From NCBI GenBank assembly GCA_038496445.1, contig JALMLS010000075.1:186001-250000 (forward strand): DNA of 64,000 bases, given 5' to 3'. How positions within the stretch are numbered: position 1 is the first letter of the stretch; each line of letters opens with the position of its first letter. Below are positions 1-40,031 of this stretch, one piece after another. Position numbers and translations under genes: made by a program. A model generated the notes under the pieces. The model searched no databases. It was not told where the DNA came from and saw nothing but the letters and a program-made list of their open reading frames with translations. The DNA comes from Trichosphaerium sp. ATCC 40318 (taxonomy: Eukaryota; Protista; Tubulinea).

Positions 1-2803
1 GTGTATCCAGAGATCCACCTAAGCATTCAACTTTCAGGAACTATTATTTCAAAAAAACTCATACCTGCCATGAAGTCCATTACTACAAGGTATGACATTG
101 TAGATTCGTTTTTACATACACCAAAAACCTGAATACGATATTAAATTAGTTGCGCAGAACTATAGAAGTTGTCTTGAGCGTACGCGAACTACGTTGTTAT
201 GAGGTCTCATTTCTACCATTAGTTTTACTTCAGCAATAAACTCGTCTACTCCGCTAACATCAGAACAGAACTTGACAGCAACATCATTAAATCGCCAAGT
301 GGCTTTCCGGACAATACCAAAACTACCTGGATCGAATAATTACAACTTTTGCTAACCAAGAAGAGACGCACCCGCTCCAAGCTTTTTGCCAAGTTGTAAC
401 TCAGAATAATCTAAGAACCAGTTTTTCGCAACCAGTGTTGATAGTGCCATAGGTCTACTAGGTTCTCTGGTAATCCCTGGTTCTTGAATTGTACCTCCTG
501 TTATGTGTGTTTCAACACGTGCATATTGATCATTGTCTAGATCTTCAGTGTGGGTTTCAACACTAGCTACTTTTCTTTCTTTAAGTTCTTCTGAGCTGCT
601 ACTTTCTTTTGCGTCCATTGTTTTGTATCTAGACGAATCCTTCTTCTGTGGCATTGTATTTTTATTCTACACACTAAATTAGAGGAGTCAAAGTTACTTT
701 GATAAAAATCATACGTGTTGCTTGAAGTACAGAAACAGTACTACTAAAAGAACGACCAACAAAATGAACACAAGCGCAATAACCAGTCCAATGATTATAT
801 ACAAAGAGCTATTATTACTTGGGGTTTCTTCTTGTGCAGGCGATTGTGGAGAACTTGTTGAAGTAGGTTGTATTGTAGTCGCTATTGTTGGAGAATCCGC
901 AGGTGGTGACTCACCTGGGTTTGCCGAAGCTTCTCCAGTATCTAATTTTGTTTAAGTCGTGCTTATGTTTTGTTGACACTTTCTGACGTACTATCGCACT
1001 CATTTAGCGTAACTCCTATGGCTAGGAATGTAGCTGCTCCATCAAATATTTCTTCGCACGTTGTTCTATAAAATTCGTCTATTGGTGGCTGCGTGACTAA
1101 GGCAGAATGTAAATTTAAGTGATATTTGTGTGTAGAGAAAAGTCTAAGTCTTTAGTTGTCTTACTGCCGTTTAGGTTGATTTGAAGAACGTAATCAGTTA
1201 TTTGACGTTTTAAAGCCCCAGTTCGAAAGATCACTCTTTCAAAGCTTGACTCTTGTTGGTCTGGAAATAATTTTGCTATCGCTGAAATAAGACTTGTAAC
1301 ATTTTCATCTGTAAATCCTGAAGTTGCTTCGAACGCTATGACAACTACAAATAAACATAAATACTAGCTTAAAGAAAAGTTGTAATCAAAGAAACAGTAT
1401 AATAAAGATGTAGGGAGCCACCAAAAAAGGTAACAATTAATCATAAAAGTATGATCATACTTGGAAAAGTTTCGCAGTCTGCCACAGCTGCAAGTGTCAA
1501 GTCATGATCTGTTTCAATGGTTAAGAAAGCTATTTCTTCAAGTTTGCTATTTGTGTCATCCACCACGTAGGAAGTGATCTGCGGTATAAATCAGTTCAAA
1601 ACGACTTAGCACAAATTCTCAATTAATTCTCAAAATAATTCCACTATTTCACGCACTGTCTTCTTGCTTGCGATATAAATGTAATCTACTGCGCTATGCT
1701 AAATTATCATGGTTATTTTGCATTCAATTATACAATATATGCTAACACTAACCGTCTCTGCAGTGATTGAAGTACAGTCTGTCAAGTCGGTAGAGAACGT
1801 TATGTTTTTTGTGATATCGCGTAAGAAATCACCATTGGGTCCTGTGAGGCAAACATATATACTTCCACCAGCTTTACAATTAACTAAATAAGTTCATAGC
1901 ATCGAACAAAGTTACGCACTTTGTACAACAGCTCTAATCTGCAGGCCCTCGTCAGTAAAGTCTGCGTCGGTTATTGTGTTATCAAAGTTCCCATCTTTGT
2001 CAACGGAAATAGTGCGTGTTATATTCTCTGTGGCAAATATAAAACCAAGTCCTCCTTGTACTTCAGTATTGGTGATGAATCCTCTTACGTCTTCTTCAAC
2101 AATTATTGCCGTATTATCGCACTAATAACGCAACATGCGAGTTAGAGTTACTAAGTAATTGTAATTTTAGAACCTTGGGATCTTTGAAGTTGTTGCAGAG
2201 ATACCAATATTGTGTCCCTTCGCATATAAAATACGCTGCGGTTTCTTGTCTTCCAGTACCACTCAATGCTATGGGTTCGCTAGAAACAATAAACCAGTAC
2301 AAAACTAAGTCTGTTTTTGGAGAGAATTTAACGCACCACTGAGTTCTAACGCTACTAATATTATATTCATTACTAGGGAAACCAAACCCGCGTTGGGGAT
2401 TAGGGCCCTCCTCTAATTGATATTCTATACCATATATAGCGTTCATTGCCCATAATCGATCGTTAAAGCTACAAACGAATGAATCGATTTTAAATTATAT
2501 CACGTGACCAAAAAAAACCAAACTTACCCGCTAATATCCGCAATATGCGTAGTGAAACTTCTAAAGACCCTGTATGATGATAAAGCACCTTGTTTGTCCA
2601 AACTAATGGTATATATTTTTTGCTCTCCAGGTACTTCTGAATACGGGTTGGCTAATACCTTTTGTTATTTCGTAACGTTTTTGATAAACGAAAATAAATT
2701 TTACGATTGTTAACATTCTTCCGCTCTTCGTACCAAAATAAGCACATGGGTCACTTACGCAAAGTGATGTGAATATTAAACCATAAAATAGTAGGCAAAG
2801 CAT
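1..2803 (-). CDS. Single-pass receptor-like TKL protein kinase (3' end runs off window), multi-exon
   Basis: Signal peptide MLCLLFYGLIFTSLCVS from ATG 2803. TM segment SLYIIIGLVIALVFILLVVLLVVLFLYF at ~725-805. Kinase subdomains I-IV across GT-AG introns: WFLDYSELQLGKKLGAG / SFGIVRKATWRFNDVAVKF / EFIAEVKLMVEMRPHNNVV. Confidence 0.85.
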
Positions 2804-37715: not shown

Positions 37716-39102
37716 GAAAACCAAATAAAAGTTTTACTATTATTTCTGACAAACGGCTATGCTTGTGTTGTCATACAAACCTCGCTCAATAGCTAAACTA
37801 AAATTAAGTGGCACATATCCTTTTAATCGACCTTCTTTGCGCTGAACACGAGCACGTGACCTGCTATTAGTTTGGGTATTGTGTAAATCTTCACGTGTTA
37901 AGCGTTTTTCTCCGTTACGAACGGAAGTTTACTTGAGATAAAGCGGCGACGACAGCCACAAACTTAGTTCAAGAATATATAACAGCAATCATTCCGCCAC
38001 CCATTCCAGTTTGGATACTGTACTGATACAGCCAAATATCGTTTTGGCTACGTGTTTGAAGCATGCTCCGTGAACAAAAGCATAGCTCAACCTACCACTT
38101 GGATTATTTTTAAGTAAATCGCTGAATTACAGAGACACGGGAAGCTATAACGCACATTGGAAGATGCCGGTTTTTTGCAGTGAAAATTCAAATGTGGATG
38201 ATTCGTTACACTCAATATGTGTAGCAACACTTTGATTATTGGCATTTAGGTTCGACACCTCTCACTTCCACACAGTGCTTGCTCTATCAAATGCCTAACG
38301 AGCTGTTTAGGTTTTCCTACTCCTCTGCTAATCTAATTATTGGTCTCGTTGGTATTGTCCGAGTTTGGAGCACTTTGCAACTTTTTGTAGTTTGTGACTT
38401 TGTGTTTACTCAGACCTGACAGTTCTCGCAAGATCTGTCAAAAACTACAAGATCTGACGGAGCTTGTCAGTTGTAGAAAATTGAACGAAATTTTTTGTAG
38501 GATGTGGGTTATTGCTAATAAGCTTTGTATGTTGTTGTTGTTGACTAAGACAAAGTCAGCTGAAGTTTAACCAAACGTGCTTAACGGAGTAAAACACGTG
38601 TACAGCCATATACAACGCATACAGATTATTGCGACACGGTGTTTTCAACCAATTTGTTTTATTTGGTACATTAGCGTATGTAGTTCTTTTGGATTCTCTG
38701 ATGACCTCTAGGATACAACACTCGTCTCCTATACTCTAAAGCGGATGATTGTGCGTACTAATACCGTACGCCTAGCGCAAGATACTTTGGAAACATCCTG
38801 TTAGATGATGTGACTTGTACTTTTCGTCTTGCCTTGCAAGAACACTTTGATACTTCTGCGAAACCTGTTGCAAACTTGAATGATACGGACAATAAGCAAA
38901 GACTATTGACCTTTAACTGTATTCTTACTAGTCCAGGTTCGATGTGGGCGCTCCTACTGATATAATATGTGATTTCTATGACTACCTGCTCAAGTGTTTT
39001 TTCTCCCTTACAAAAAGTGGTGATCGCGTCTCGTTGCCTTTAATAGAAGTGTACTCCAGGTTTATTTTAAACCATAGGAGTACAACAAGTAAACGATGAA
39101 AA

Positions 39103-39182
39103 CACTCTTCAGGTGGGCGCTCTTCCAACTGAGCTACAGCAGGATTTAGTCCTGCTGGGTAGGATTCGAACCTCCGACCTCC
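39103..39182 (-). tRNA. Circularly permuted tRNA-like gene (anticodon GAA): 3' half 39182-39150, 6-nt linker, 5' half 39143-39103; functional status unknown
   Basis: Minus strand: GG AGGTC GGAGG TTCGAAT CCT(A)CC CAGCAGG A | CTAAAT | CCTGCTG TA GCTC AGTTGGAA GAGC G CCCAC CT GAA GA GTG | TTTT. Acceptor stem CCTGCTG/CAGCAGG pairs 7/7; anticodon stem CCCAC/GTG+GG pairs 5/5 once the halves are joined. Confidence 0.7.
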
Positions 39183-40031
39183 AAATCAGAAAGACCCGAT
39201 GACATTACTGCACCACACCAAATAATTAAAGCAAGGAGCTGTTTGTACGATGAAAAAAACAAAGCTAATTTATTGTGGTTTCCAAAGTAATGTTGGCATT
39301 GCTCTTTTGATTCTGTAAAGTATGAATAAACTACATAAAAAGATATTGTGAACAAAAAGGATTCTGAGTTTTTTACCAGTTTCATTTTAAATGAATACTT
39401 TGCATTTACCATGAGGTTCATCAACCCACATGACTTGTTCCTCAAGTTGTCCATTCTCATACTACTTTGCGTATTTGAGGGACACTACACGTGTTTGTTT
39501 GTGTTTATTGTACCTTTGTACATTTTGTTTTTGTTTTTGCAGTTGAACAGTGCTAAGCGCAAATCTATGATTGAGATTGTAGTGGCGAACAAAAACCACA
39601 CTATGTTGTTTGTCAGCGACCAGGAAAAGAATGGACTGTACATCAATTCCTCCTTTCCTTCGTGTACAACTTGTTGCATTACTGAAACTTTACCATTGAT
39701 AAATAAAATCAGTCGGTTCGATTAGCCCGCCACCGCTTCGCTCCCATCTCGTTTCTTCTTACAAAGGGGTAGAACGTCTGGATTGGGTGGTCTTTGGTTT
39801 GTACCTATTAAGGCCAAACACGTGTTCACTTGTTTTATCTCTCCGTCACAGGGAGTGAATGGTTATGTTTTCTTTATAATGACAAGTATAAGAAAATCGT
39901 GCTAAGCTTACTTAATTATTTGACAATTTAACTCACGGTTCGTTTAGCTGTGCTTACATACTCTTCAATAAAATGACTATTTATTATTGAGTTGATATTG
40001 CTATTATTAGGATACTCTGATTTGGTGTTTC

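Follow-up and report, generated by a model that had tools for sequence, protein, structure and literature searches.

A tRNA-shaped unit in permuted order, broken at positions 41/42 and lacking a bulge-helix-bulge, in the amoebozoan Trichosphaerium

On the minus strand of a Trichosphaerium contig, the 3' half of a tRNA stands upstream of a 5' half, which raises the question of whether an amoebozoan carries a circularly permuted tRNA gene and, if so, of what kind and in what state. The first-pass annotation of this DNA had proposed such a gene, with its halves meeting at tRNA positions 41/42. We analysed the locus within a window of 64 kb, this being the whole stretch of DNA under analysis, and all positions are numbered from its first letter. 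Thirty-four permuted tRNA genes were catalogued in a 2014 review, from six algae and one archaeon (PMC3978253), and a 2026 review names algae and archaea as their only holders (PMC13578239). The annotation's statement that it knew of none in Amoebozoa is therefore in line with the published cases, all of which are algal or archaeal. Our own literature search returned no paper dealing with both Trichosphaerium and tRNA, and none on permuted tRNA genes in Amoebozoa.

Permuted layout and rejoined cloverleaf

Read on the minus strand, the unit comprises tRNA positions 42-73, the linker CTAAAT, positions 1-41 and TTTT, and each of these elements was found where the annotation had placed it (Table 1). 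The acceptor strands pair at all seven positions (7/7), as had been claimed, and the joint at 41/42 is exact, the halves abutting with neither gap nor overlap and completing the stem CCCAC/GTGGG. The linker and A73 together make up a 7-nt loop that closes the acceptor stem. CCA is not encoded, the 3' end of the tRNA being CAGCAGGA, and the sequence across the rejoined junction reads GAAGAGTG up to position 41 and GGAGGTC from position 42.

Table 1. Minus-strand elements of the permuted unit and its surroundings, with the neighbouring gene copies
Feature	Position	Strand	Remarks
T7 run upstream of cassette	39259-39253	-	Would stop Pol III arriving from upstream
Upstream copy of exact 10-nt direct repeat TTTTCATCGT	39256-39247	-	At end of T7 run
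Leader, 64 nt	39183..39246	-	No TTTT run
AT-rich TATA-like box TTTAATTATTT	39231-39221	-	In leader, 40-50 nt upstream of G42
tRNA 3' half, positions 42-73	39182-39150	-	G42 G43, variable loop AGGTC, T arm GGAGG-TTCGAAT-CCTACC, acceptor 3' strand CAGCAGG, discriminator A73
B box GGTTCGAATCC	39172-39162	-	In T arm of 3' half
Intervening linker CTAAAT, 6 nt	39149-39144	-	
tRNA 5' half, positions 1-41	39143-39103	-	Acceptor CCTGCTG, TA (with U8), D arm GCTC-AGTTGGAA-GAGC (with G18 G19 A20), G, anticodon-stem strand CCCAC, anticodon loop CTGAAGA (anticodon GAA), GTG (G39 T40 G41)
A box TAGCTCAGTTGG	39136-39125	-	In 5' half
TTTT	39102-39099	-	Adjoins G41; sole Pol III-type stop of unit
Downstream copy of TTTTCATCGT	39102-39093	-	Directly after G41; contains TTTT
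Probable decayed cassette duplicate (S2)	38940..39092	-	Begins with repeat; no tRNA fold left; alignment, moderate support
D-arm and anticodon-stem relic TCAGT-AGGAGCGCCCAC	38960-38944	-	At end of S2
Two tandem gene copies	26.6-30.8 kb, 33.4-37.7 kb	+	
Two tandem gene copies	40.0-44.4 kb, 44.8-49.0 kb	-	

When the rejoined 74 nt were scored, as the annotation had proposed, ARAGORN (default settings) returned tRNA-Phe(GAA). The cloverleaf has an acceptor stem of 7 bp, a D stem of 4 bp and an anticodon stem of 5 bp that closes across 41/42, all three of them perfect. Its structure is flawed at one point only: the 3' strand of the T stem holds a surplus A, the nucleotide that had been annotated as bulged. 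Once this A is deleted, the fold of lowest energy is a perfect cloverleaf of 73 nt. The universal nucleotides are all present, both in the body of the molecule (U8, A14, G15:C48, G18 G19, A21, U33 and a purine at 37, here G37) and in the T arm (G53-C61, T54 T55 C56 and A58).

The distinctness of this arrangement was assessed by a scan for permuted tRNAs over both strands of the window. All 7-bp acceptor-like hairpins with a loop of 2-41 nt were collected (n=2,129) and each was rejoined at every cut point giving a total of 71-77 nt, and the resulting constructs, approximately 850,000 in number, were submitted to ARAGORN. A full-length tRNA was obtained from this locus only, so that within the window there is no second instance of the 3'-half/linker/5'-half order that the annotation had suggested searching for. 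No full-length tRNA emerged when the window was shuffled six times with its dinucleotides preserved and the 5,994 hairpins of these shuffles were scanned likewise. The single locus in the window together with the empty shuffles indicates that the arrangement is more than chance, and we regard the permuted order as confirmed, real and sharply bounded. The annotation had failed to find a conventional partner for either half nearby, and no conventional tRNA was present anywhere in the 64 kb, whether sought with ARAGORN with and without introns or with Rfam models at their gathering scores.

Break point, processing and identity compared with known permuted tRNA genes

In layout the unit resembles the permuted genes of Cyanidioschyzon merolae, prasinophytes, the Bigelowiella nucleomorph and Thermofilum pendens, in all of which the 3' half comes first. 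Published intervening sequences measure 1-74 nt, and most of the known genes have a TATA-like sequence no more than 50 bp upstream and a T stretch downstream (PMC3978253). The Trichosphaerium unit shares the short linker (6 nt against 1-74 nt), which likewise contains no stop signal, the absence of an encoded CCA, an AT-rich box within 50 nt upstream, a T stretch after the 5' half and the retention of the consensus tRNA nucleotides. It differs from the algal and archaeal genes in its junction, which lies inside the anticodon stem, in its amoebozoan host, in the surplus base of its T stem and in its mixed identity elements. Known junctions fall at 15/16, 20/21, 37/38, 50/51 and 59/60 (PMC3978253); 41/42 is absent from this list, in agreement with the annotation, which knew of no such junction.

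The remaining difference concerns processing. Most known permuted genes form at the junction a bulge-helix-bulge (BHB) that is cut by the splicing endonuclease (PMC3978253). The annotation had been unable to build a strict BHB here, and our enumeration led to the same result: in none of 288 geometries did 3-nt bulges occur together with a central helix of 4 bp and a helix on either side of it, and the canonical register at the junction gave two of the four central pairs and no flanking pairs. Without a BHB, the route through splicing endonuclease and circular intermediate used in algae and archaea cannot apply to this unit. The unit thus shares the layout of permuted genes but lacks the processing signal of the algal and archaeal class, and what is new in it with respect to the known genes is the break point, the absence of a BHB and the host lineage. 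Permuted gene order is also a feature of two-piece tmRNA and of fragmented rRNAs, and in principle base-paired pieces could likewise result here if the linker were cut. In contrast to those RNAs, a two-piece product of this unit is hypothetical, and we know of no natural two-piece tRNA.

The identity elements of the unit are mixed. The eukaryal tRNA-Tyr set comprises A73, C1-G72, G34 and U35, and the tRNA-Phe set A73, G20, G34, A35 and A36 (PMC9976931), whilst the unit carries C1-G72, A73, A20 and G34-A35-A36. The Phe set is accordingly represented by A73 and the GAA anticodon, with A instead of G at position 20 and C1-G72 instead of the usual G1-C72. The Tyr set is also incomplete, A73, C1-G72 and G34 being present and position 35 being A. 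Judged from its letters, the unit combines an acceptor end of tyrosine type with a Phe anticodon that differs from the Tyr anticodon GUA by a single base. The mixed identity and the T-stem insertion together give it the look of an off-type or drifting copy. Likewise, the surplus A, the combination of Tyr-type acceptor and Phe anticodon, and A20 suggest a weakly functional or non-functional paralogue rather than the tRNA-Phe of the cell. An error in the assembly may have introduced the surplus A, and the copy would then appear intact. Of the interpretation offered by the annotation, the permuted arrangement, the 41/42 joint and the lack of a BHB stand, whereas the extra base in the T stem and the conflict between a Tyr-type acceptor and a Phe anticodon tell against a working gene.

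The reading that we favour, with a probability of roughly one half, is that the locus may belong, as a weak or decaying copy, to a class of permuted tRNA units of Pol III type that is particular to this lineage. For such a class the following course can be proposed. Transcription of Pol III type would yield a single short RNA that extends from the upstream AT-rich box to the T run. In this RNA the T arm and the D arm would form, as would the acceptor stem, with all of its 7 bp and its 7-nt loop, whereas the anticodon stem would be interrupted by a nick between G41 and G42. For a tRNA to result, the 5' leader and the U tail would both have to be removed as far as this nick, which an RNA ligase acting on nicks in a duplex would then seal. 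RNase P and tRNase Z might subsequently open the linker, with CCA added after the encoded 3' end. A stronger form of the proposal holds that the amoeba matures a whole set of 41/42-broken permuted tRNA genes in this manner, by trimming, ligase sealing and opening by RNase P and tRNase Z, and with no part for the splicing endonuclease, and that the present copy yields a working tRNA for Phe codons with a Tyr-type acceptor; we hold this to be rather unlikely.

The strongest rival is that the unit is a fully functional permuted tRNA gene, whose transcript is joined between G41 and G42 independently of a BHB, opened at the linker, given its CCA and charged; the anticodon and A73 would specify Phe, or C1-G72 and A73 would in part specify Tyr. 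The complete tRNA body, with every universal nucleotide and three perfect stems, argues for this rival, as do the exact abutment of the halves with TTTT at the junction and the intact state of this copy beside a probable duplicate that has decayed (see below). It has to contend with the surplus nucleotide in the T stem, with the conflicting identity elements and the A at position 20, and with the lack of a BHB and of any known enzyme route. In addition, no junction-spanning or colinear piece was present among RNA-like contigs, although such contigs cannot show small RNAs. On balance we consider full function unlikely, and prefer a weak or decaying member of a permuted class.

The known permuted tRNA genes, from a few algae and one archaeon, all depend on the BHB splicing machinery. 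Amoebozoan units that are broken in the anticodon stem and have no BHB would point either to a second, hitherto unknown maturation route for permuted tRNAs or to a eukaryotic class of tRNA-shaped small RNAs. To this question the present locus contributes the bounds of its cassette, a probable decayed duplicate that bears on how such units originate, and a case of mixed Tyr/Phe identity.

Cassette bounds and leader-tail pairing

Two exact copies of the 10-nt sequence TTTTCATCGT, spaced by 154 nt, bracket the 64-nt leader and the 80-nt unit and so delimit a cassette of 154 nt. A repeat of such length in such a geometry was seen at 0.8 % of control positions. No TTTT occurs between the TTTAATTATTT box and the terminal TTTT, nor anywhere inside the leader or the unit, and four Ts are a minimal terminator. 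With a T7 run upstream, no internal TTTT and a terminal TTTT, the cassette has the bounds expected of an independent Pol III unit. Its B box precedes its A box, an order unsuited to TFIIIC, and the AT-rich box taken alone is not statistically unusual in a genome of 37 % G+C. The bracketing repeat and the cassette that it delimits, the probable decayed duplicate, and the complementarity between leader and tail described below had all been missed by the annotation. Weak matches to C/D-box snoRNAs were also obtained on the opposite strand (E 3 to 10) and were treated as chance.

The first 37 nt of the leader can pair with the terminal 19 nt (G26 to G41 plus UUU), with a predicted energy of -18.5 kcal/mol. 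A duplex as good was formed by 15 of 1000 shuffled leaders and by 11 of 1207 genomic 40-mers. The pairing, which may extend to 19 bp, is conditional on an RNA that starts near 39246. Were transcription to begin just after the T7 run, the resulting terminal stem would be predicted to compete with the anticodon hairpin and to produce a layout like that of YrlA, a bacterial and phage Y RNA-like tRNA mimic in which a long 5'/3' terminal stem carries the Ro60-binding site. If instead the AT-rich box acts as a TATA box, the RNA would start approximately 15-20 nt before G42 and the terminal stem would be absent.

These features bear on a second rival, according to which the locus encodes a stable tRNA-shaped small RNA, a YrlA- or Y-RNA-like mimic standing on a terminal stem of leader and 3' end, that never becomes a tRNA. 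YrlA (RF02553) was the best Rfam match of the unit, covering the T arm, acceptor and D arm at 23.9 bits (E 0.019 in 1.1 kb), and like YrlA the unit presents a T arm, a loop-closed acceptor-like stem and then a D arm, with a 5'/3' terminal stem possible. With a start near 39246, the leader-tail pairing would also speak for the mimic, since only about 1 % of controls equal it. However, the YrlA score lies far below the gathering score of 69 bits, corresponds to E 1.1 when the whole window is considered, and concerns model positions 24-84 only. In contrast to YrlA, the unit has a full anticodon loop and an exact anticodon-stem complement that closes across 41/42, and it sits in a eukaryotic nuclear context. 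Further, the terminal stem demands a start upstream of the AT-rich box, and the fold of the whole cassette is no better than that of shuffles (z -0.72). We therefore judge a mimic to be quite unlikely, and retain the weak or decaying permuted unit as the better reading.

Probable decayed duplicate and genomic setting

Immediately downstream of the cassette lies a segment (S2) that begins with the repeat and preserves several relics in collinear order, among them the exact 10-mer GAGCGCCCAC and, at an offset close to that in the cassette, TCAGT from the start of the D loop, after which comes a shortened second copy of the trailer. Global alignment of the cassette with S2 scored 95, against 71.6 +/- 10.2 for genomic segments (n=1,316); six of the 1,316 reached that score, and several of these six overlap the locus. 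Identity between cassette and S2 is 43 % (MAFFT). We interpret S2 as a probable old tandem duplicate of the whole cassette, for which the alignment offers moderate support. If the duplication is real, the stems have all been kept in the present copy and all lost in its twin, a contrast that fits past constraint on this copy. Candidates for further copies of an array, upstream (S0) and downstream (S3), were not significant. A tRNA-like similarity at 38247-38305 had a score within the background of the window.

The 10-nt repeat had also suggested a target-site duplication left by retroposition of a Pol III transcript. Of the traits expected of a SINE or retro-copy, the flanking 10-nt direct repeat is present, there is no A-rich tail, and the window holds no other copy. 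The collinear relics that continue past the second copy of the repeat disfavour this origin, and as tandem duplication accounts for both the repeat and the relics, target-site duplication was dropped as first choice.

Local duplication is central to a third rival, in which the permuted order is a functionless product of DNA rearrangement, left either when one conventional tRNA gene, present as a tandem or dicistronic pair with 6 nt between its members, lost the outer halves, or when a cassette was inserted, with gene-like bounds that are coincidental. According to the published model, permuted genes originate when a gene is duplicated and the outer halves are then lost, and in Ostreococcus lucimarinus the permuted tRNA-Cys(GCA) has an extra 5' half downstream (PMC3978253). 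The Trichosphaerium unit is similar in having a 5'-half relic downstream, which suggests local duplication as its origin, but here the relic is barely recognizable and lies within what is probably a decayed copy of the entire cassette with its leader. Duplication at the locus is itself evident. Under relaxed settings, ARAGORN moreover folds the leader and the 3' half as a weak conventional cloverleaf, in which the leader and the 3' acceptor strand pair at six of seven positions. We had considered the leader as a decayed outer 5' half, and dropped this idea because its in-register similarity to the 5' half is not significant, being equalled at 292 of 3,456 control positions. Nothing similar to the missing outer 3' half follows G41. 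Nor would neutral decay be expected to spare just two complementary halves with their stems intact. A functionless rearrangement is slightly more improbable again than a small-RNA mimic, and a weak or decaying member of a permuted class remains the reading that we prefer.

The cassette is located in a unique centre of 2.3 kb (37720-40027) between four convergent copies of one gene, two on either side, the product of which is a glycosidase with ricin-B-lectin, GH3 N- and C-terminal and Fn3-like domains. Similarity among the four copies is 80-93 % along their length and reaches 99 % in short blocks. In contigs from four sequencing runs these genes are spliced, with short GT..AG introns removed, and it is for this reason that the contigs look like RNA. 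An assembly artefact or a chance resemblance is very improbable: the central position in a large inverted gene duplication is an error-prone setting for assemblers, but the arms are 80-99 % alike and not identical, the 2.3-kb centre is unique, the flanking genes have spliced contigs in four runs, and chance is excluded by the window scan and shuffles. The divergence of the arms and the spliced contigs of these genes, taken together, give no sign of a fold-back artefact. For the ORF that overlaps the unit, no encoding contig was on record. Queried with the final exon of the adjoining gene, a search for homologous proteins produced no match, and two metagenome scans, one with the permuted junction and one with the 5' half, each returned none.

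The runs retrieved for the stretch each cover only a small part of it. Across 37.8-40.0 kb the contigs of the four runs have almost no depth, and as contigs of this type are blind to small RNAs, expression of the unit is neither supported nor refuted by them. The sole contig piece identified on the unit, from run X5, joins its D arm and its T arm through 19 other letters (39178 to 39118). We rejected this piece as a joined form of the unit, since it represents a tRNA in conventional order whose acceptor stem is a different one and whose anticodon loop reads CTTCTAA (anticodon UCU). An ordinary tRNA in run X5 thus has its D and T arms in common with the permuted unit.

Possible conventional tRNA-like folds at and near the permuted unit

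When the leader, the 64 nt directly upstream of the 3' half of the permuted unit, was read together with that half, ARAGORN at a relaxed threshold returned a weak conventional cloverleaf at 39149-39222 (minus strand), annotated as 'Glu UUC'. The leader stretch TTTGGTG pairs with the 3' acceptor strand at 6 of 7 positions, and in-register similarity between the leader and the tRNA 5' half was not significant. A minus-strand relic in conventional order (Table) comprises a 7 bp closing stem (GGCATTT/AAATGCC), a hairpin with a 4-bp stem and 7-nt loop, and a T-arm-like hairpin containing TCGAA. Its similarity score to the permuted unit did not rise above window background, and its tRNA-like appearance may therefore be due to chance. 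Beginning approximately 15 nt downstream of the T run of the permuted unit, an inverted repeat was identified within the probable decayed cassette copy.

Table. Features identified in the window
Feature	Position	Strand	Detail
Glycosidase gene, four copies	26584-49025		ricin-B-lectin, GH3 (N and C domains), Fn3-like; intron-rich
Inverted repeat TGTACTCC/GGAGTACA	39050-39084		perfect, 8 bp, 19-nt loop
tRNA-like relic	38247-38305	(-)	59 nt, conventional order
ORF, 270 aa	18597-19409	(+)	intron-less; LRR_6-type leucine-rich repeats
C/D-box snoRNA-like match to SNORD78	226-292	(-)	34.3 bits

A tRNA contig in run X5

A contig from X5, one of the sequencing runs aligned to the window, matched positions 39118-39178 and represents a tRNA in conventional order. 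This tRNA shares D-arm and T-arm sequences with the permuted unit, carries the anticodon loop CTTCTAA (UCU, Arg-type) and has GCCCTTG as its acceptor 5' strand; it is not encoded within the 64-kb window.

Glycosidase genes and other features

The glycosidase gene copies form two tandem pairs converging on a unique 2.3-kb centre, with 80-93 % likeness overall and up to 99 % in short blocks. Their introns (GT..AG, 44-75 nt) were seen spliced in contigs of the aligned runs. Elsewhere, the SNORD78 match fell slightly short of 38, the gathering score set for that family, with an E value of 0.06 over the whole window, and the leucine-rich repeat assignment of the intron-less ORF had a Pfam E value of 4e-19.
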